From the NCBI GenBank assembly GCA_025558095.1, contig JAIVFI010000028.1:1-64000 (forward strand): a DNA stretch of 64,000 bases, written 5' to 3'. The translations under genes and the position numbers were made by a program. The notes beneath the pieces were generated by a model. It was not told where the DNA came from and did no database searches. It saw nothing but the letters and a program-made list of their open reading frames with translations. Below, piece after piece: positions 1,454-17,739 of this stretch; the stretch's first letter is position 1; each line of letters opens with the position of its first letter. Origin of the DNA: Hyaloraphidium curvatum SAG 235-1. Lineage: Eukaryota > Fungi > Monoblepharomycota.

Positions 1454-2094
1454 ATGCGCCTCGCTATGGGCGCTCCACTGCTCATGCTCCTGCACGCCTG
1501 CGCCGTCGCGGCATCCCCGCTCTCCCGCGCGTCGTCCGGCGCAGTCTTTGCTCGGTCCTGCGGGGAGTGCCCAGATACGCACTTCTGGTGAGCCCGCGCC
1601 GACAACCGAGCGTCCAACCGGCCGACATGGGCCCTCCCAACAGCGAGTACGGCTACGACGGCACCCCGACCGACTCCGTGGCGTGCGTGCCCGCCACGGC
1701 CCGCCACGACCTCTACCGCCGTTACGCGGCCACAGAGTCGGCCTGCACCGACGCCCAAGCTCTCGCTGCCGGCGCCACTGTGGTGTGCGCCACTGGGGCC
1801 TTTTTTTTCCGCGGCTGCGACGTTGCCACTGGCGCCAACGCGGCGGTGGACGCAACGTCTTCCACAGGCCTATGTGCCACGAGCCAGCTGTGCTGCATTC
1901 CCCCCGCGGCTTTCCAGGCTGCCTTCTGTGCGGGCAAGAAGATGTGCGTGGACGGGACCGCGATCGCCCTGGCTGTGACGGAGGGCGTCCGGCGGACGTG
2001 CGACCCCTCGACGGGCCAGGTGGATAACGGGACAGGAAGTTGCTCTGGCTCGACAAAGGGTGTCTTTGCCGGCTGCTGCGAGGCGGTGACCTGA
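1454..2094 (+). CDS. Secreted Cys-rich precursor, LYRRY family copy A (2 exons, ~194 aa)
   Basis: Exon 1 is 1454-1587 (MRLAMGAPLLMLLHACAVAA...AVFARSCGECPDTHF). Phase-2 intron 1588-1643 (GTGAGC...CAG). Exon 2 reads CEYGYDGTPTDSVACVP...DLYRRY followed by a 12-Cys domain. Confidence 0.85.
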
Positions 2095-2853: not shown

Positions 2854-3508
2854 ATGCGCCCCGCTTTCGCCGCCTTATATCTGGCGCTCCTTTGTGCCTG
2901 CGCCGCCGTCGCGGCCCCGGTCGACCCGCCGCCCGCCGGCGCCATCTTCGCGCGCTCGTGCTCCGATTGCCCGAGCACACACTTCTGGTTAGCACCGCAG
3001 TCCCATTCTCCCCGTTTCCGCTCACCAGGTCCCCCGCGCTAGCGAGTACGGCTTCGAGGGCGCCCCCGAAGACTCGGTGTCGTGCGTGCCGGTCGCCTCG
3101 GCCCGCCACGACCTCTATCGCCGCTACGCCAACGCCCCCTGCACCGACGGGTCCCTGGTCGGTGCCGGCGCTTCGATGCAGTGCGCGCCGGGGGCGAAGA
3201 TTTTCGAGGGCTGCGACTCGTCCACGGGAGCCCTCGCCCCCGCTGGCGCCACCTCCGCGGCCGGGGGTTGCTGGCCCGGCGACGAGATCTGCTGCGTCCC
3301 GGGGGCGGCCTACGCCGCCCTGTGCCAGGACGGCGCGCCCCAGTGTAAGGAAGGGAGCTTGTTCGCCCTTTTCATCACCGACGGGGTCCATCGGCCGTGC
3401 AACGTGACGAGCGGGGAGGCGGGCAACGGCGGCACGGGAACGTGCACCATATCCGGGCCGTATGCGCCCCCCGGGGTGCTCGCCGGCTGCTGCTACCCGC
3501 CAACTTGA
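2854..3508 (+). CDS. Secreted Cys-rich precursor, LYRRY family copy B (2 exons)
   Basis: Signal peptide MRPAFAALYLALLCACAAVA, then AIFARSCSDCPSTHF. Intron 2988-3042 (GTTAGC...TAG) at the family-conserved position. Exon 2 contains HDLYRRY and a 12-Cys domain ending GCCYPPT. Confidence 0.85.
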
Positions 3509-4956: not shown

Positions 4957-5608
4957 ATGCCGCTCGGTCTCGCTGCCACGCTGCTCGCGCTCCTGTGCGC
5001 TTCGGGCGCCCTCGCGGCCCCACTCGAGGCCCCGGCCGCCGGCGCCATCTTCGCCCGTTCCTGTGGGGACTGCCCCACCTCGCACTTCTGGTGGGCAGCG
5101 CGAGCGCCGCTCCGCCTCCGACTCCGGCTAACGGATCCCGTACAGCGAGTACGGCTACGAGGGCACCCCGCGCGACTCCGTGGCCTGCGTGCCCGCAGCG
5201 GCCCGCCACGAACTATACAGGCGGTACGACGACCCCACCGCCTGCACCGACGCCACCTCGACGGGCCAGGGCGCCACCAAGATCTGCGAGGGCGGGAACG
5301 ACTTCACCGACTACGGCTGCTACCCATCAACAGGCGCCATCGTCCCGTCGGGTTCCTCGTCGGCCCCGGGCGCGTGCCGCGGCGCCCAGAACTGCTGCGT
5401 GCCCGCGTCCGCCGTCATCGCCGAGCTCGCAGTGCTCTGCGGCACGAGCAAGCCCTGCGTGGACGGGGCCAACGTCGCGCTTACCATCCAGGACTTGCAG
5501 TACAGGTCGTGCGACCCGACGACGGGTGCGCTCGGAGGCTCGTACGAGTGCTCGAGGTATGATCAGAGTATGATCGCGGCCTGCTGTTCCCGGGCGCCCG
5601 ATGGCTAA
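4957..5608 (+). CDS. Secreted Cys-rich precursor, LYRRY family copy D (2 exons)
   Basis: MPLGLAATLLALLCASGALAAPLEAPAAGAIFARSCGDCPTSHF. Intron 5091-5145 (GTGGGC...GCTAAC...CAG). Then HELYRRY and a 12-Cys domain. Confidence 0.85.
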
Positions 5609-8740: not shown

Positions 8741-10609
8741 ATGGCTTCCCGTGCCCCCGATGGCCCGACCGCCGAGGAGTGGGTCGCGTGGGCGCTCGCG
8801 GCGTCGGGGATCGGGCGATCGCCCGCCGCCGCCGCATTTCTCCCCCAGCAGAGGATGGCCGACCGCCGATCGCCCCCCACGCTCTCCGCGTCCGAGGCCC
8901 TGCAGGGGCTGTCTGGCGTGTCGATCCCGCAGGGCTTCACGTTCCGCCCGTCGCCGGCGGTGCTCGCTGCCGCGGGGCGGGCGGCCGCGGCGAGTCAGCC
9001 CCCCGCGGGGTTGCCGGTGCCCCCCGCGGCCGCGGGGATGCCGACCCCCATGCTGCTCTCGCGGGGCGCGCCGGGTGACGTGGCGATGCTGTTCGGCGGG
9101 CCGCCGTCGTTCCCGGGGCAGCCCATCGGGTTGGGGCTGCTCGCGCCCCCGCGGCCGCCGTCGCCCGACTGGGCCGCGCTGCTGCGCGACCCGCCCTCGC
9201 AGCCGCGCTCCCCGCAGCACTCCTCCGACGACGACGCCGACGCCCGCCGCCCCGCCCTGCCCGCCGCCCGCCCCGCCCGCATCACCGTGGCTTCCTCGCC
9301 CTTCGCCACCGACCCGGCCTCCCCGCTCCGCTCCGCCCCGCCCTCCGCCACCCCCGCCGTCACCTCCGAGAACGACGCGCCCTTCATCGACCACTTCCTC
9401 GCCGCTCCCTCGTCCGACGGCGGCGCCGACCTCGACCCGCTCGGCGGCCTGCTCGAGCCGTTCGCGGGCATGCACGCCGACGGGGGGGACTTTCCCGTGA
9501 TCGACGACGCGGAGATGCAGCTGTGGCACGGGATCGTCGGCCGGGAATCGTCCGAGGACCGGGAGAGGTACGGCGAGGCGATTGGGGGGGAGGAAGCCGA
9601 TGATGAGTCGGCGGCCGACGTCATCCGGCGGTGGCTCTACCCCCCTGGCGGCCAGCACCCCATCCGCTCCCCCCTCCCCGCGGACCCCATGCAGCTCGAC
9701 GCCCTCCCCGGCCCCGACTTCGACGTCGATGCCGCGCATCAGGAGCGGGAACCCGACGTCGACGCCACCGACCACGAGCAACCCGCCCCCGACGCCGACG
9801 CCTCGGACCACGGCGGCACCGACGCGGACGACGAATCCCGCCCCGGCGGCGCCCCGTCCTCCCCCTCGGGGTACTCCCCCTCCCCGTCCCCGCCGCGCAC
9901 GCGCCGCCGGCGCAACCCCCCGCGCCGCGCGGCCACATCCCCGTCGCCGGCGCCGGAGATCCTCACCACCCCGATCCTCAAGGTCGAGCCGCGCAAAGGT
10001 CGGCCGATCTACTACACCGGCCGCCTCGCGCTCGAACGCCCCTCGTCGCCTCCCCCCGAGTCGGATTCGGACACCGACGGCACGGGCGAGTTCGCGGCGC
10101 CCGACGACGGCACGGGCGGGGGGAGGCGGAGGCGGGCGCGGCTGCCGGCACCGAGCAGGGTCAACGTCAAGGACGAGGAGGGAGGCAAGACCAAGAAGCG
10201 CGGGTTCAGGTGCGAGGTGGAGGGGTGCGGGGAGGATTTCGGGACGTGGAACGCGTACCGTGGGCCCCCCCCGCCCGGCTCCGTCGTCGCACTCTTGGCG
10301 CTGACGTACAGCGGTATTCGCGGACCCGCAGAATACCACATCCGCAACTCGCACGACGAGCACAAGCCCTTCCGGTGCCGCGAGTGCGGGCGGGGCTTCA
10401 CGCGCGCGCACGACATGCGCCGCCACGGGACGTGGGTGCTCGGCGCCTCCGCCAACGGCTTCCCGCCGCTGACGGATTCCCCCCGGCTGCATGGCACCCA
10501 CAGGCTGCACTCGAAGGAACGCCGCTTCCCCTGCCCGGCGAAGGGCTGCGGCGCCGCGTTCTTCCGCGCCGACGCGCTGCGGCGGCACAGGGCGCAGAAG
10601 GAGCACTAG
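8741..10609 (+). CDS. C2H2 zinc-finger transcription factor (3 fingers, long Pro/acidic N-terminus)
   Basis: Fingers CEVEGC...HIRNSH, KPFRCRECGRGFTRAHDMRRH and FPCPAKGCGAAFFRADALRRH. Two inferred 72-nt introns (10260-10331, 10432-10503) have GTGGG donors and GCTGAC branch sites; their removal restores finger spacing. Confidence 0.85.
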   Translation: MASRAPDGPTAEEWVAWALAASGIGRSPAAAAFLPQQRMADRRSPPTLSASEALQGLSGVSIPQGFTFRPSPAVLAAAGRAAAASQPPAGLPVPPAAAGMPTPMLLSRGAPGDVAMLFGGPPSFPGQPIGLGLLAPPRPPSPDWAALLRDPPSQPRSPQHSSDDDADARRPALPAARPARITVASSPFATDPASPLRSAPPSATPAVTSENDAPFIDHFLAAPSSDGGADLDPLGGLLEPFAGMHADGGDFPVIDDAEMQLWHGIVGRESSEDRERYGEAIGGEEADDESAADVIRRWLYPPGGQHPIRSPLPADPMQLDALPGPDFDVDAAHQEREPDVDATDHEQPAPDADASDHGGTDADDESRPGGAPSSPSGYSPSPSPPRTRRRRNPPRRAATSPSPAPEILTTPILKVEPRKGRPIYYTGRLALERPSSPPPESDSDTDGTGEFAAPDDGTGGGRRRRARLPAPSRVNVKDEEGGKTKKRGFRCEVEGCGEDFGTWNAYRGPPPPGSVVALLALTYSGIRGPAEYHIRNSHDEHKPFRCRECGRGFTRAHDMRRHGTWVLGASANGFPPLTDSPRLHGTHRLHSKERRFPCPAKGCGAAFFRADALRRHRAQKEH

Positions 10610-10689
10610 ATCGGGGGCCCCGCCGTCGGAGGAGCATGGGTGGGACGGGGGAACATGTATGCGGAGGCAAATTCGGGCTCATATAGAAG

Positions 10690-10795
10690 GACGCCGTCGG
10701 TGCAGGCCGGCATGGCGGCGGGCTCGTAGCGCCGGTAGAGGTCGGCGCGAGAAGAGATGCCGACGCAGGTGACCGAGTCGGCGGGGGCGCCTCGT
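10690..10795 (-). pseudogene. LYRRY family copy E, short remnant
   Basis: Translates GAPADSVTCVGISSRADLYRRYEPAAMPACTDG. No signal-peptide exon and no C-terminal domain are visible. Confidence 0.7.
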
Positions 10796-11022: not shown

Positions 11023-11623
11023 CTACGGGGCGAGGCAGCAGCCGGCCGGGCCGCCGGCATAGATCCCGGAGCACAGTCCGGCCCCACTGCCCACCTGGCC
11101 CGTCGCGCGGTCGCATGCCAGCCGGACGCCGTCCGCCGCGGTCAGGGCCAGTTCGGCGCCGTCCACGCAGACCTTGTTCGACAGGCAGTTGGTGAGCAGG
11201 GCCCACGGCACGCAGCACAGCTCCGTGTCCACCGAGGCGCAGACCCCGGAGACCGAGGCGGCGCCAGGCGGCGGGGATGCCCCGGTGGCGACGGTGCAGA
11301 TGTCCCCGTCGGTTATCCCGGCGGAGCACTGCTTCTGCGCACCGAAGCCGAGCAGGGTCGTGTCGGTGCAGGTCGGCAGCCCGTCGTAGCGGCGGTAGAG
11401 TTGGCGGAGCCCGGCGGCGGCGGAAACACAGGCCACGGAATCGGCCGGGGCGCCCGGGTAGGCGAACTCGCTGCCGGATGGTGGCGGTCAGCCGGGGAAC
11501 GAACGCCCCTGCGCTTCCGGAGCGGGCGAAGATGGCTCCGGCGGCCGGGGCCTCGAGCGGGGCCCCCAGGGCGACGAAGGCCGAGAGAAGAGCGAGCAGC
11601 GCGGCGGCGGCGGCGTGGCGCAT
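11023..11623 (-). pseudogene. LYRRY family copy F; end of exon 1 and the splice donor are deleted, exon 2 is intact
   Basis: MRHAAAAALLALLSAFVALGAPLEAPAAGAIFARS runs straight into intron-like sequence (GCTGAC...CAG) without CxxCPxxHF or the canonical donor. Exon 2 reads EFAYPGAPADSVACV...QLYRRY plus 12 Cys. Confidence 0.7.
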
Positions 11624-11884
11624 GGCGGCTTCGGGGCGCGGCAGCGCGGACTGTCTCTCGCGTCGCGCAGATGGCGGCGGGTGGGCAGTGATGATTCTCA
11701 GGGCTCGGCGGGAGACCGGGGCGGCGCGATTCTTGGCGAGAGTCTGGACACTCGTGCGGCTCGATGCGGGAAGCGGCCCAACGCCGCCCACGAAATGCCC
11801 CGACACACCCGACTGCGCGTCCATTTGCCTCGCCCCGCTATATCCGTACTCCCGGCAACTGGTTTCTTTTTGATCGAGGCCAAG

Positions 11885-12003: not shown

Positions 12004-12217
12004 GTCGAGCGGGAAAGGTGCAAATCACAGGGGCGGGCTTAGGTCGAGCGAGGAGGCTGCAAGTCCAGGTGTTCTTTCCTGGGTGTACAGCAATTGCCGA
12101 TGACTGCTACTTCTGCGGGAGATCCTTTCGAACTGCGAGATGCTTTGTCGGACGGACTGGCCGGCATTCAGTCCCGCCATCCGCACGCACGGCTCTCTGG
12201 CCCACCTGGAACACGGC

Positions 12218-12851
12218 TCACGAAGCGAAGCAACAGCCCGCGGCCCTGCCCGCAATCATTTGCTGGCAGTTCCCCGTGCCGGTGTTGCCCGTCTCGCCCG
12301 TCGCGACGATGCAGGTCCGCGGGGAGAAGTCGGTGATGGTGAGCGCGATCTCGTCCCCCACGACGCAGTACTTGTCGCCCCCGCACATGCCCACGATGCC
12401 CGACGCGGGGACGCAGCACAGGTTCGTGCCGGTGCCGCTGGTGCACGCGCCCTTAGCCGAGCCGGCGCCCGCGGGGGAGATGGCGCCGCTGGAAGCGTCG
12501 CAGCCCTGCCACTCCTGGGCCCCGGAGGGGCATTTTACCGTGGCGCCCTTGCCGAGGGCGTCGGTGTCGGTGCAGGCGGGGCTGTCGTAGCGGCGGTACA
12601 GCTCGTGGCGGCGCGCGGTCGGCACGCACGCGATCGAGTCGGCGGGCGCGCCCGGGTAGGCGAATTCGCTGGGGGAGGGCGCGGTCAGCCGGCAAAGGAG
12701 GCACTGCGGTTTGAGATGCGGCCCACCAGAAGTGGTAAGCGGGGCATTCGGAACAAGAGCGGGCGAAGACGGCGCCGCGTTCGGCCGGGGCCGCGAGCGC
12801 CGTTCCGGCGGACAGGAGCAGGAGCAGCGCGGCCGCGAATGAGCAGCGCAT
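12218..12851 (-). CDS. Secreted Cys-rich precursor, LYRRY family copy G (2 exons)
   Basis: MRCSFAAALLLLLSAGTALAAPAERGAVFARSCSECPAYHF. Intron 12669-12726 (GTGGGC...GCTGAC...CAG). Then CEFAYPGAPADSIACVP...HELYRRY and a 12-Cys domain. Confidence 0.85.
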
Positions 12852-13461: not shown

Positions 13462-15136
13462 ATGGGAATCCCTCAGGAAATCGCGCCCGGGATCGCAACG
13501 GGCCCGGCTCCGGACGGAAACGCGGACGCGTCGCCCGATGCGTCCCCCGCCTCCTCCACTTCTCTTCCCGCCACGCCGTTTTTCACAGCATCAGAGCTGC
13601 TCACCATGTTCCCCGCCGCTCTGCCGCCCCCCGACGACCTGATCCCCGGCGCCATCCCGCCCGACCCTGCCGCCGAGCTCCGCGAAGCCGACCCTCTCAA
13701 CGAAACCGCCCTCCTCCGTGCCCTCGCGCCCTACCCTGCCCTTCGCGCCCTGGCGCGCTTGCAGCTGGGTTTTGTGCCCCTCTGGAGCACATTCACCGCG
13801 CCCCTCCTCGTCGCAAACACAATCGCTGCCTCGGGGACGCTCGCGGCCTCCTTCGTCTTCGGCGTCGACACCTTCGGAAAGCGTAACCTGGCCATCACCG
13901 GGGGGCTGTGGGTGCTGCTCATGCTCTTGATCACCGTCCTTGCGCTGTCGAGGGTCTCGTCGCGGAAACGGAGCTTCGCGGCCGAGGGCGGCGACCTGGG
14001 CTCCGTCCCGTTCGCGCCCTTCGCGCGGTGGCACCAGCTGGCGGGCAGTTTCCCCGCAAAAGACACAGAAGACGGCCGCTCATCTTCGGGCGGAAACATC
14101 TCGCCCCTGGTGCGCCACCGGGACGGCGACCCCCTCTGCCCGTGCCACCGCTCGACGTGCGGCGGCTCGCTCGTCGGTCCGGCTGTCTTCTTGCGCTGCT
14201 TGGACATCATTGCGCGTTACCTCATCCTTGTGGGGGGCTATTTTTTCGCGGGTTACACCGCGCTGGTCACCTTCGGCCGGCAAACGTGGACCACTCCATG
14301 GTCGGCCTTTTTCGCCGCGCTCCTAGGTGGGTAGGTAGAGGGTCCGCCTCGGCCATGCTGAACCGTCTTCCCAGTCTTCATAACGGTCGTGCTGCCGCTT
14401 CTGCCGGCCATCGCCATCGGGGGGAGCAACATCTACTCGCTGCGCCTCGGCCAGAGACTGCACTGCCGCGGGCTCCGGCGCGTGCTGGCCGCCTTCCTCT
14501 CTCGATACGAGTCTGCCCTCCTCGGCGGCAAGACGCCGTCGGTGCGGACGCGGAACCCTACGAGGACATCTGCGAGCGACTGGCGGTGCTGTGGCGCAAC
14601 CGGTTCCCGAGCAGATCCGCAACGCCCGTCGTCATGACCAACTACCTGCTGGTTCCTGTTATCGTCGCCATTGCCACCATTGTGAGTCATTCCGTCTTGA
14701 CGCCGCACCCCCGTTCACGCCCCCGCCCGAACAGATCTCGGGCTCCTGCATCCCCGCGTGGCCCTTCTTCACCTTTGCCTACGGCCTCCTCCTCGTCTTC
14801 ACCGACCTCGTCAACCACGCCTCGTCCAACTCCCAGGTTTCCGCCGCCTCTTCCCTCCTCCGCCAGGCCGCCAAGGAATCCACGCGGCTCCTCGCACGCG
14901 CGTCCGCCCAGGGCCTCGCTGCCAGCCCCGCCGCCGCCGCCCTGGCCCGGCACGCGGAGCTGCTTTCAGCCTACGCGGCCGCGGACGGATGCAAGGCACG
15001 GTTCGCGGGGTTCGTGGTGACGTACGGGACTGCGAGGACGTTCGCGGTCACGCTGTTCACCCTGGGGGTCGGGCTGTGGAGCGTGCTCAGGGGGGCGGGG
15101 GTGTACGTGGTGCCCGACATTGCGTGCCCGGCGTAG
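13462..15136 (+). CDS. 7-TM membrane protein, DPLCPC family paralog 1 (2 introns; apparent frameshift near 14540)
   Basis: Shares DPAAELR..DPL, DPLCPC..TCGG, TWTTPWS and the C-terminal GFVVTYGTARTFAVTLFTLGVGLWSVLRG motif with 38927-40324 and 47828-49444. Introns 14327-14374 and 14682-14734. The frame changes between GGKTPSV and DAEPYEDI. Confidence 0.75.
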
Positions 15137-15256
15137 GAACCAGAAGATCCCAGTACAAGGGCTTGGGATTCACAGCCGGATTCGTGAATGAATTGAACCT
15201 TCCCTAACCCCTGTCTCCTAGCCGTTCCCGGGGAATCCTAACCGCCGCGCGCGGAT

Positions 15257-16328
15257 TCACGAAAGGCCCCCGCCAAACACCTCGACCCCCTCCTCCTCGG
15301 CGCGCTGCATGAGCTCGTCGTCCGCCATCTCCCCCTCCTCCTCCACGACCTCCTCCTCACCCGGCGCCCCAATGGCCCCCGGCACCCCGCCAAACAGCTC
15401 CCCCCACGCCTCCCTCAACCCCCACACGCTATCCACCGTCCAACCCCTCCCCTCCAACCCCGGCCTGCACCGCGGCCACGCGAGGTGGTTCCTCTCCCTT
15501 TTGGCCCGCGACTTGGCGACCATCTCCGCCGGCATGGACGTGAGCAGGTGCTCGGCGTCGGGCCCGGCGGCGTGGTGCGCGCGCGGGTGGCCGGGCTCGT
15601 CGAGGTGCGCGGCGTGCCAGCCAAAGTGTGTCCGCGCGACGTCTGGAAACAACGTCAGCGGCCGAAATCGCACGCCAGCAGCGGGAGAACCCACCGCAGT
15701 TCTCCCAGTTGTCGTCGATGAAGTAGATCTGCAGCCTCGGCCCCCCTTCGTGCCGCGCCTCGGGCCCGTACTCGGCCAGCCACCGCTCCCACACCCCCGC
15801 GTCCTTCATCGCCTTCACGTAGGCCCCCGCCTCGGGCTTGGCGACGAAGAACTTGTCGCGGTAGTCGCACGCCGTGATCCCGTCGAAGTGGTGGCGCACC
15901 TTCAGGGCCCCGAGGATCCTTTCCGCGTGCCGCATCTGGCCGTTGGTGAACACGTGCTTCCTGTACCCCTTGAGTGAGGACAAGAACGAGTCCAGAATCC
16001 CCGGCAGCTCCGGCGGCAGCAGCTCCAGCGGCACGCCGCCGTCGACGTGCCTGTCGAACGCGTCCACGTCCACGTCGAACTCGTCCACGAGGCCGTGCAG
16101 CGACATGCCGTAGGCGTTGAACCACTGGAAACACCGCCGGCGGCTCTCGTCGTCGGTGAAGCCGATGGTGCGGCAGAAGGAGTAGAGGTTTTCGGTCATG
16201 TGCGCGCCGATGCCGCACGAGCGCGGGTACAGGCAGTTGTCGAGGTCGAACACGAGCAGCGTGTGCGCCGGGTCCGGCAGAGTGGGCGGCGGGCCGTCGG
16301 CTGCAGCCGCCGAGGCGCCTGACGGCAT
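15257..16328 (-). CDS. HAD-superfamily pyrimidine 5'-nucleotidase (SDT1/PHM8-like)
   Basis: Motif I VFDLDNCLYP, then YGMSLHGL, FTNG, HFDGITACDY, AKPE and YFIDDN. Intron 15643-15694. Confidence 0.9.
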
Positions 16329-16947
16329 TGCGGCGGTGACGAGGCGGGCCGGCGGGCGGTGTTGTCTTGGGCGAAGCGGGGCCGAGGCGGCCGCCAATCG
16401 CGGCCCGACGGTACGAGCGAGACTGGCGAAAAGGCGATGTGGCGAAATTTCGGTCAATGGAGCCGGCGGAACGGAACAGGAGCTGTGGAGCGGGTCGGGT
16501 ACACGTGGAAGCGGGTCCGCGATCTTCTGCGGACTCCCGGACCACAGACCTGCGATCGTGCGTTTCCGACTTGCGAGCCAAAGGCATCGAAAGACGAAGC
16601 TTGACCTCCTAAAACTGTCCTCGATGGCCACTTTCCGTTGGTAGACTGTCCCCAGCTTCTCTCTATCCCGCCCGGTGGAGGCTGCCCGGTGGGCTGTGGC
16701 GACTGTTGCCCCGATGGCGCCTGCCGCCGCGTCTACGCAATCCAGCGTGTCACAGCGTCGCAGCGCTGCTGCACCCTTCTTTCGACCAGCCCTCGACCTT
16801 GTATCTGGATCATGCGGGAAGCGCGCGCATATCAATATATCTCGTCGGCGGATGTTTACACGGGACTTTGGATGTTCCTGAAAGCACGTCAGTCTGCGGC
16901 AGCAGCGAGAGGCAACGCAACACGTGCCTCCGGGATCCGCTGCCGTC

Positions 16948-17568
16948 CTATGTCGGGCATGTCGCCGACAGCGTGGGGCACGTCAGGCCATACTTGACGT
17001 ACCAGTTGAACAGCGTCCCTCCCGTCGTACGTCCGGTAGTGCCGACGGTGTTTAGCTGATACATATCAGTGCCCACGACGGCGTATGCGGCGCACGACGA
17101 CCCCATGCTGGTGCACATGGCAGCGGCCTCCGCGTCGGAGGATACTGGCGTCACATACGCGGGAGCACCGCTGCAGGGGGCAAACGTGCCGCAGTCGATG
17201 TACTCGGGGGCGTAGCGCCGATATAGCGAATGGTAATCGGTGTCCTTCTGGCCGATGCAGGCGACTTGGTCCTCCGACGCACCGGGGTGCCCGAACTCGC
17301 TGCGGGGCGGAGCGCGGCGTGATATGAGCCGTCCGACGTCGCCGCGGTGCCGCGGGATATTCGTTACCAGAACGTGTCCTGCCCGCACTCGGAACACGAC
17401 CGGGCAAAGAGGATGTGTGAAGGGCCTCCGTCCCCGCCGCGGACAGGCCTGGCGGTGCAGGGTCAGGAAGTGCGGCCCGGCGGAACCACTCGCGCGGTCT
17501 TACGTGGCCCCCGCGAGCGCAAGGAGAGCGGCGAAGGTGACAAGCAAAAGCAGCAACGGGCGTGACAT
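16948..17568 (-). CDS. Secreted precursor, LYRRY family copy H with a different mature domain (3 exons)
   Basis: MSRPLLLLLVTFAALLALAGAT | intron 17449-17503 | PVRGGDGGPSHILFARSCSECGQDTF | intron 17300-17367 | CEFGHPGASEDQVACIGQKDTDYHSLYRRY, then a 6-Cys domain unrelated to those of copies A-G. Confidence 0.8.
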
Positions 17569-17739
17569 GGTGGACATTGGATTGGTGTTTGAGGTGAGTT
17601 TTCCGCAAACCCTGCGGCGGGGGGGGGGGGTGTTCGGTGAGGGATGCTGCACACCTTGCATGGAAGGTCACCGACAAGGCGCTCCATTGATAGAGCGAGC
17701 TGGTTCCGTAATGTTTCACCCGCTCTGGCTTGGAATTAG

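Follow-up and report, generated by a model that had tools for sequence, protein, structure and literature searches.

Copy H, a gene in the 64,000-nucleotide stretch of the Hyaloraphidium curvatum SAG 235-1 genome analysed here (the window), is probably one member of a large secreted superfamily of this fungus in which a lineage-specific prepro leader is cut by a kexin-type convertase at LYRR/Y (the slash marks the boundary) and in which the combinations of leader and cargo are old. As judged from the sequences, the superfamily is defined by its N terminus and not by a functional domain, and what is new in it is a leader, four-cysteine and predicted to be folded, that is common to whole unrelated domains in one free-living fungus. 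We propose that the signal peptide would take each leader–cargo protein into the endoplasmic reticulum, where the leader would fold as a generic, cargo-independent tag, and that a kexin-type convertase would then cut after LYRR (aliphatic P4, basic P2 and P1) in the late secretory pathway, freeing a cargo that always begins with tyrosine. The combinations, kept by purifying selection on the leader, would have multiplied through gene duplication, more often close to contig ends.

All elements of the earlier description of copy H are present in the sequence, on the minus strand from 17568 to 16948, and the gene reads as a signal peptide, a four-cysteine leader and an 88-residue 6-Cys cargo (Table 1). 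The N terminus appears by eye to be a signal peptide, with an arginine in the n-region, a 15-residue Leu/Ala core and an ALAGA end. An in-frame ATG at 17577, 9 nt upstream of the ATG at 17568, offers an alternative start. The public model of the gene (P0012, KAI9011566.1; 208 aa) is spliced identically to our prediction and opens at an ATG at 17661, with the predicted signal peptide then buried; the RNA contig over copy H stops near 17633. Both introns have been removed at exactly the predicted joints in RNA contigs of run X1 and, since these contigs are spliced, they derive from RNA. The first intron separates the signal-peptide exon from the leader exon, and the second is the conserved intron of the leader family. 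The first base of exon 3, the C at 17299, finishes the interrupted cysteine codon, and the exon continues with EFGHPGASEDQVACIGQKDTDYHSLYRRY and then the cargo. An RNA contig with 16878..16927 removed runs on from copy H into the next gene.

Table 1. Features of copy H and of related copies in the window (positions are those of the window).
Feature	Position	Strand	Details and evidence
Signal peptide of copy H, MSRPLLLLLVTFAALLALAGA	17506..17568	-	opens at ATG 17568
Exon 1 of copy H	ends 17504	-	sequence
Intron 1 of copy H, 55 nt, GT..AG	17449..17503	-	RNA joint 17447>17503, cut shifted one place
Exon 2 of copy H, ..PSHILFARSCSECGQDTF + TG	17448-17368	-	sequence
Leader N-terminal half, copy H, ..PSHILFARSCSECGQDTF + TG (third Cys codon, bases 1-2)	17368..17426	-	
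Intron 2 of copy H, 68 nt, GTAACG..CAG, phase 2 in Cys codon	17300..17367	-	RNA joint 17299>17368
Leader C-terminal half, copy H, (C)EFGHPGASEDQVACIGQKDTDYHSLYRR, dibasic end	17215..17299	-	profile A1, E = 4.2e-15
Cargo of copy H, 88 residues, 6 Cys, first residue the invariant Tyr	16951..17214	-	
Stop codon TAG of copy H	16948..16950	-	sequence
Intron of 50 nt, GC..AG, 20 nt past the copy H stop	16878..16927	-	joint 16876>16927, 3 ambiguous letters
Copy A, 12-Cys A-type cargo, public P0040	1529..2094, last exon in frame 1645-2091	+	
Copy B, A-type cargo	2929..3508, last exon 3044-3505	+	
Copy C, A-type cargo	5032..5608, last exon 5147-5605	+	
Copy D, A-type cargo, public P0045	12218..12785, last exon 12667-12221	-	
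Further A-type copy, last exon intact	11023..11469	-	
Truncated copy	10609..10791	-	matches only profile positions 6-28 of the leader C-terminal half

These data bear out the original prediction that copy H retains the leader of its neighbours. The pattern FARSCSEC..F/CEFG..VAC..LYRR/Y is kept, its C-terminal half scoring far above chance against the family profile (E = 4.2e-15), and the intron inside the third cysteine codon matches that of copies A, C and D in both place and phase. The extra intron noted after the signal peptide is real, as the RNA joint demonstrates, but is no peculiarity of H: in 32 of the 76 sampled copies (∼40%) the frame of the FxRSC exon does not take in the signal peptide, and the public model of another copy, L028, has the same three-piece leader.

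We searched the whole 32-Mb assembly with a profile (A1) of the 28-residue C-terminal half of the leader. All 150 candidates that were scored, of 181 in total and spread over most contigs, matched it, which puts the putative leader-bearing loci of the H. curvatum genome at a minimum of 150. The leader spans 47 residues with four nearly invariant cysteines, the consensus of 77 full leaders being v.F.RsC..C....fCEf.yPgaP.g.VACV(8-11 residues)LYRR/Y. In the public proteins it starts at a median residue of 31, just past the predicted signal peptide, a short variable spacer lying between the two. The motif F[ARK]RSCx[ED]Cx4-5[FY], followed by a TG/GT donor in the third cysteine codon, occurs in 64 distinct sampled copies, and the splice is confirmed by six intronless copies that read through as ..[FY]CE[FY].. 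without interruption. Nearly all profile-matched proteins carry a single leader, and copy H has no leader repeats. About half of the profile-matching loci were sampled; cargo statistics below refer to 83 sampled copies and 85 public representatives.

The leader is predicted to be a small folded unit in its own right. We modelled an intronless paralog consisting of the leader and a PAN cargo (L010; pLDDT 84.6), in which the leader forms three strands (residues 3-6, 16-20 and 30-34) with a pLDDT of about 90 over residues 1-30. Across residues 31-50, which include LYRRY (43-47), confidence falls to 68-72, and all PAN/apple matches align from residue 49 onward. This confidence profile suggests a separate folded leader joined to the cargo by a less ordered link that bears the dibasic pair. 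The only structural neighbour covering the leader was helianthamide, a disulfide-rich peptide of 44 residues, with a Z of 2.6 that is not significant.

H. curvatum belongs to the Monoblepharomycota, chytrid-like fungi, and to our knowledge is a free-living freshwater organism that is not a known pathogen and has no host on record. A 47-position profile of the leader, searched against 1.84 billion representative proteins, matched 85 proteins at E ≤ 1e-3, 59 of them at E ≤ 1e-10. The 30 of these that were checked are all single-member clusters from H. curvatum named 'hypothetical protein', and about 35 remaining ones show high identity to sampled loci of the same genome. Pfam yielded no family for the exon pieces of H, for parts of the leader or for the 85 public proteins, PDB sequences no match, and the ESM Atlas, searched by features, no match; 68 pattern matches came from one metagenome scan, none of them confirmed. 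Among the databases searched the leader is found in H. curvatum alone, and by sequence comparison it is lineage-specific. Literature mentioning H. curvatum, among the matches listed, does not address the family.

What follows the leader is diverse. The original prediction took copy H as a sign that the leader is a portable cassette, a constant part with exchangeable cargo, and held that clustering the domains after LYRR across the genome should reveal many unrelated types. Clustering after RRY gave 24 clusters for the sampled copies (83) and 26 for the public proteins (85), that is, at least 24-26 classes; with a constant leader at no fewer than 150 loci and at least 25 unrelated classes behind it, the cassette reading is upheld. 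PAN/apple, the class of H, is the largest (about 30 sampled copies on many contigs and 22-25 public proteins), followed by the A-type 12-Cys cargo (15 sampled, 12 public). Cargoes that Pfam can name are PAN, EGF, Stig1, NHL, Kelch and ALK_LTK_GRD; they include NHL propellers, one Kelch propeller and an ALK/LTK glycine-rich domain. Others comprise a further 6-Cys class, Ig-like beta domains, Stig1-like Cys-rich repeats, a DUF11-like domain and many singletons, and lengths range from 33 to more than 380 residues. Extracellular binding modules (PAN, EGF, Ig-like, NHL, Kelch) make up most of the cargoes, which suggests a surface or matrix repertoire.

The domain behind LYRRY in copy H had been called unrelated to that of its neighbours and, by impression, PAN/apple-like, and both descriptions proved sound. 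The 88-residue, 6-Cys cargo is distinct from the 12-Cys cargo of copies A–E, scoring 1.1 bits against the A-type profile. Against a profile of PAN-type paralogs built without copy H it scored 24.2 bits (E = 1.9e-9), the maximum over 1000 shuffles being 12.4 bits. No match to the Pfam PAN models (PF00024, PF14295, PF08276, PF08277) was obtained with the H cargo even at E ≤ 10. Of 22 aligned members of its class, 15 match Pfam PAN_1 at E < 1 (best 4.6e-5) and 14 match PAN_4, and the two-domain cargo of copy L043 reaches 28.6 bits against PAN_1, where the Pfam cut-off is 21.4. In an alignment of the class (A2), the copy H cargo is without cysteine at two nearly invariant positions, 30 and 51, and keeps Cys 34, Cys 41 and the rest. 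If the pairing is 30-51 and 34-41, which we assume from the HGF N domain, then copy H has lost one whole disulfide and is a derived PAN member; the paired loss suggests a coordinated event and not decay. The two core PAN disulfides, which link the helix CxxxC to the central strands, are not both kept in copy H.

The fold of this class was read from the L010 model as a stand-in for H. It has the alpha-helix packed on an antiparallel beta-sheet that characterizes PAN domains (strands 51-55, 59-69, 88-92, 96-107 and 115-120; helix 73-81), and residues 49-124 superpose on the plasminogen PAN domain with a Z of 9.4 and an rmsd of 2.1 Å over 72 residues. The HGF N domain (Z 8.1), MANEC (Z 8.0) and Wsc1 (Z 7.5) follow; the top 27 VIA matches are all PAN, apple, MANEC or WSC, and the top Foldseek matches are all PAN modules. 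On the profile scores and the fold modelled in the paralog, the cargo of copy H is best read as a PAN/apple-type domain without one cysteine pair.

The window, which is itself the start of contig C28, has 67.7% G+C and short spliceosomal introns. In copy D the intron at 12669-12726 was confirmed by RNA. No FxRSCxxC motif was found upstream of the further A-type copy, and the truncated copy has a 40-residue open frame after RRY. A word-index protein search with P0045 returned only P0045 itself. With the last exon of H the search found nothing, an effect of its length window, since the 208-aa public protein is 1.79 times as long as that 116-aa query. The A-type cargo was modelled confidently (pLDDT 91.8, pTM 0.83), and its model found nothing below E = 3.5 in the PDB with Foldseek, a best Z of 2.1 with VIA, and no neighbour in the ESM Atlas (TM ≤ 0.34); as modelled, this 12-Cys cargo has no known fold among the structures searched. 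The idea of exchangeable cargo stands or falls with the H domain differing in fold from those of copies A–G and with the existence of other cargo types. Both were found, since hhalign detects no relation between the H-type and A-type profiles (probability 0.3%), the structural neighbours of the H-class (L010) and A-type models are entirely different, and many further cargo classes exist.

We infer kexin-type cleavage at LYRR/Y from the form of the boundary and from the convertases that the genome encodes. The leucine at P4 agrees with the preference of kexins for an aliphatic residue at that position. The boundary carries a [KR]R pair in 76 of the 85 public proteins; among 77 aligned leaders, 70 have it (91%), as LYRRY in 55 and as LYKRY in 7; copy H has LYRR, and 7-9 copies carry RS, RA, RC, RD or GR instead. 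[KR]R is the accepted KEX2 site (PMC5293756), and a dibasic convertase site can take either lysine or arginine at P2. Above the cut-off, 11 loci of the genome match the proprotein-convertase P domain (PF01483, P_proprotein), the best at 85 bits. Within the cargoes, in which K and R make up only 4.4% of residues, 15 dibasic pairs were observed against 8.8 expected; such pairs are not depleted, so the cargoes do not independently suggest that they meet a dibasic protease.

The alternative that survives best, although we consider it unlikely, is that the leader is retained as an N-terminal domain, a common anchoring, wall-binding or oligomerising module in which LYRRY is structural. The lack of dibasic depletion in the cargoes would suit this, as would a model that is compact and confident (pLDDT about 90 over residues 1-30) where a propeptide might be disordered, the four nearly invariant cysteines, and the fact that most cargoes are binding modules with no anchor of their own visible. 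The leucine, the tyrosine and the invariant following tyrosine around the dibasic pair are also conserved beyond what a kexin site needs and may have a structural or other role. Yet the basic pair allows K/R exchange and little else (91% [KR]R), it falls in the L010 model in the lowest-confidence stretch, exactly at the boundary between two folded units, and P-domain convertases are encoded in the genome; nor did Pfam, wall-binding families included, contain a sequence match to the leader. We retain cleavage at LYRR/Y as the preferred reading.

Given cleavage, the leader may do more than be removed. At its N-terminal edge lies a second motif, [VL]F[RK]R/SC, with RR or KR in 39 of 77 leaders, so that release of the leader as a product fits as well as its simple removal. 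One possibility, which we offer tentatively and rate somewhat below retention, is that the leader is a new lineage-specific sorting and processing tag that sends a whole repertoire of extracellular binding domains along one dedicated pathway, and that roughly half of the genes encode a leader cut at both ends to give a ∼42-residue 4-Cys peptide with a function of its own. The destination would be, for example, the cell wall or regulated secretory vesicles, and the invariant N-terminal tyrosine of the cargoes might serve for attachment or cross-linking. A related rival, in which cuts at [VL]F[RK]R/SC and LYRR/Y make this ∼42-residue peptide a product proper and the cargo a second one, seems to us improbable. 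It would account for the [aliphatic][aromatic][basic]R form shared by the two sites in the 39 leaders, for the leader being the most conserved part of every gene, and for public models that are nearly leader only (P0043, 73 aa; P0054, 83 aa; P0069, 72 aa), and the sole structural neighbour, helianthamide, is a peptide of similar size (44 residues; Z 2.6, non-significant). However, 20 of the 77 leaders, those of copy H and copies A-D included, have Ala-Arg at this motif, and such a pair makes a poor dibasic site; the short models may reflect incomplete annotation, as introns lie 0-4 codons past RRY in several copies; and more than 150 genes for nearly one peptide are hard to explain.

The original prediction likened the leader to the RXLR and Crinkler leaders of polymorphic effectors. 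We find this delivery role very improbable, despite a large expanded family with a conserved N terminus past the signal peptide and modular C termini, an about two-fold enrichment of leader copies near contig ends, and Crinkler-like genes reported from another chytrid (PMC3161006). Neither RxLR-dEER nor LxLFLAK/HVLVxxP occurs in the leader consensus. The motifs of RXLR and Crinkler proteins lie in unstructured regions, whereas the leader is predicted to be a disulfide-bonded fold; as a folded disulfide module with a dibasic end it looks like a prepro region and not like a host-translocation motif. The cargoes are extracellular binding modules and not the intracellular enzymes typical of Crinkler C termini. 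We know of no host on record for H. curvatum, and among the matches listed there was no pathogen literature on it.

How the combinations arose can be approached from the leaders themselves. Leader identity is about 50% even across cargo classes, cargo identity within a class is 32-37%, and in 319 of 324 same-class pairs the leader is more conserved than the cargo. On a leader tree the cargo classes require 48 label changes against 51.8 for shuffled labels and so are barely clustered. A conserved leader that clusters only weakly by cargo fits a generic constrained tag and not a chaperone tailored to one cargo. Among 82 copies we found no pair of leaders with ≥80% nucleotide identity over ≥120 nt and different cargoes. 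The view that the combinations are old, with no swaps, draws mainly on this nucleotide test, because the leader tree, built on 46 columns and with no well-supported branch, is unresolved. Introns were considered as an exon-shuffling joint: at least six copies have an intron 0-4 codons past RRY, yet its place and phase vary, so no single joint is visible. At least 52 of the 150 leader loci fall in the outermost 50 kb of a contig, roughly double the number expected.

A swap exactly at LYRRY had been proposed for copy H, and of this the boundary holds, in that homology with the neighbours ends right after LYRRY, and the recent event does not. The nearest leader to that of H is the leader of the PAN-class protein P0014 (65% identity) and not that of any neighbour in the window, so copy H is not a recent local swap. 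That a neighbouring A-G-type copy lost its cargo at LYRRY by recent recombination is hardly credible: H does have the A-type tandem array 4-5 kb away and shares its strand with copy D, and its homology with the neighbours does stop where such an event would place it, but the C-terminal half of its leader shares 48-52% identity with those of A-E but 55-62% with copies elsewhere, it pairs with P0014 on the leader tree (SH-aLRT 85; tree poorly resolved) while A and D group with the A-type P0037 and one PAN/WSC-like protein (P0055), it has three exons against two in A-D, its PAN class is the largest, with about 30 sampled members on many contigs, and a recently shared leader with different cargo was found nowhere among the 82 copies.

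The best-known examples of conserved leaders on modular secreted proteins come from pathogens (RXLR, Crinkler) and from the venom and defence peptides of animals. H. curvatum is an early-diverging, free-living fungus, and in its genome one leader, predicted to be folded, precedes 25 or more classes of domain in 150 or more genes. Should the leader serve as a processing or sorting tag, the superfamily would be a natural experiment on the origin and spread of a secretory address label, and also a ready-made catalogue of the surface and secreted proteins of the fungus. Two candidate new domain families, annotated at present only as hypothetical proteins, emerge: the leader and the 12-Cys A-type cargo.

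The combination of a conserved prepro part with variable products has precedents in Kex2 substrates, in conotoxin-like precursors and, loosely, in RXLR and Crinkler proteins (PMC6339444, PMC4558851, PMC11860864, PMC5289972). With the RXLR and Crinkler families (PMC5289972) the H. curvatum proteins share a conserved leader after the signal peptide, diverse modular C termini, and expansion with enrichment in dynamic genome regions; they differ in a leader that is predicted to be folded, is cysteine-rich, ends in a dibasic pair and has no motif similarity to either. The likeness to Kex2 propeptides (PMC6339444, PMC7329392, PMC5293756) lies in a signal peptide followed by a pro-region that ends in [KR]R, for which late-Golgi cleavage would be expected, in a genome with P-domain convertases. 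Known fungal Kex2 propeptides are, however, short, unstructured and protein-specific, whereas in H. curvatum one module of 47 residues and four cysteines, folded according to the model, serves 150 genes or more. Kex2-processed repeat proteins (KEPs) consist of repeats of the released peptide; the leader is not repeated within a protein, and the leader proteins do not show the tandem [KR]R-ended repeats by which KEPs are recognized.

The cargo class of H, for its part, shares its modelled fold with PAN/apple domains (PF00024, PF14295; Z 9.4-7.1 over 68-79 residues, with weak Pfam matches), a set that takes in the plasminogen and HGF N domains, coccidian microneme PAN modules and the related WSC fold. 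Copy H itself differs in matching no Pfam PAN model and in being without both cysteines of one conserved pair, and the PAN domain of the leader family stands alone, at about 85 residues, and not within a multidomain adhesin or protease. The leader family as a whole is also like conotoxin-like precursor superfamilies, in which conservation is higher in the pre-pro part than in the product, a basic site marks the boundary and large families are lineage-specific. Those precursors yield short mature peptides, usually built on a common cysteine framework, whereas the cargoes described here are whole unrelated domains, and the conserved part in H. curvatum is not the signal peptide but a pro-module that is predicted to be disulfide-bonded.

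Leader loci, defined by the 47-residue four-cysteine module that follows the signal peptide and ends in LYRR|Y, are not spread evenly over the assembly. Across the whole genome, at least 52 of the 150 lie less than 50 kb from a contig end, where ∼26 would be expected, an approximately twofold enrichment that is also evident at left contig ends alone (28 loci versus 12.9 expected; P = 8e-5). The loci are often grouped in small clusters, and no telomere repeat was seen at positions 1-600 of the window. Identical family copies occur in two pairs, L007 (contig C17) with L008 (C47), and C30:62504 with C48:18053, and one public protein (P0035) carries two accessions on two contigs. C47 and C48 are small contigs, the identical partners lying on larger ones, and they may be alternative haplotype pieces, in which case the count of 150 leader loci would be slightly inflated. 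Judged by their sequences, some family copies also look decayed, with an in-frame stop, a shortened sequence or no upstream motif (see table).

A second motif resembling LYRR|Y, [VL]F[RK]R|SC, stands ahead of the first cysteine in about half of the leaders. Among 77 public leaders the residues at this N-terminal edge are RR in 26, KR in 13 and AR in 20; copy H, which carries the PAN/apple-type cargo, and copies A-D, which carry the 12-cysteine A-type cargo, all have Ala-Arg.

P0012, the 208-aa public model of H, takes ATG 17661 as its start codon, ∼30 residues ahead of the signal peptide (region 17568-17661, minus strand), a start that would bury the signal peptide. The spliced RNA contig of H ends near 17633, which favours ATG 17577 or 17568 as the more likely start codon. 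At the other end of the gene, RNA contigs place a short 3′ UTR intron just past the stop codon in both family genes with RNA support, beginning 20 nt downstream of the stop in H and 12 nt downstream in D. Both contigs run on along the same strand, that of H into the next gene, a HAD-like hydrolase (15074-16876), and that of D over an additional stretch of more than 1 kb in the direction of the following family copy. This continuation may stem from UTRs that overlap, from read-through transcription or from chimeras made in assembly.

Other public gene models are unusual in their extent. P0043, P0054 and P0069 consist almost entirely of the leader (72-83 aa) and may be either annotations cut short because an intron directly behind RRY, such as is present in L030, L031, L033, L056 and L067, was overlooked, or real stand-alone leaders. 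In P0041, P0048 and P0031 the leader lies deep inside long models (at residues 789, 394 and 195, respectively), and these seem more likely to be merged neighbouring genes than proteins with true internal leaders. The public protein set taken as a whole includes Pfam matches such as those to VIT1, thioredoxin and short-chain dehydrogenase.

Coordinates of family features in the window and at sampled leader loci
Feature	Position	Strand	Detail
3′ UTR intron of H	16878-16927	minus	50 nt, apparently GC..AG; RNA contig
3′ UTR intron of D	12157-12205	minus	49 nt, GT..AG; RNA contig
A-type cargo	1723-2091	+	
A-type cargo	3125-3505	+	
A-type cargo	5225-5605	+	
A-type cargo	12221-12589	minus	
A-type cargo	11026-11388	minus	
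[VL]F[RK]R|SC motif, example	L057:2257-2397		
Leader with in-frame stop	L059:7660-7716		FRRSC*DC
Shortened window copy	10609-10791		part of leader, 40-residue frame behind
Window copy with intact last exon	11386-11700		FxRSCxxC motif missing upstream

The structure of the A-type 12-cysteine cargo was predicted with high confidence (pLDDT 91.8, pTM 0.83). Searches with this model found no structural neighbours in the PDB (best VIA Z 2.1; nothing by Foldseek) or in the ESM Atlas (TM ≤ 0.34), and the predicted structure makes the A-type cargo a candidate for a new disulfide-rich fold.
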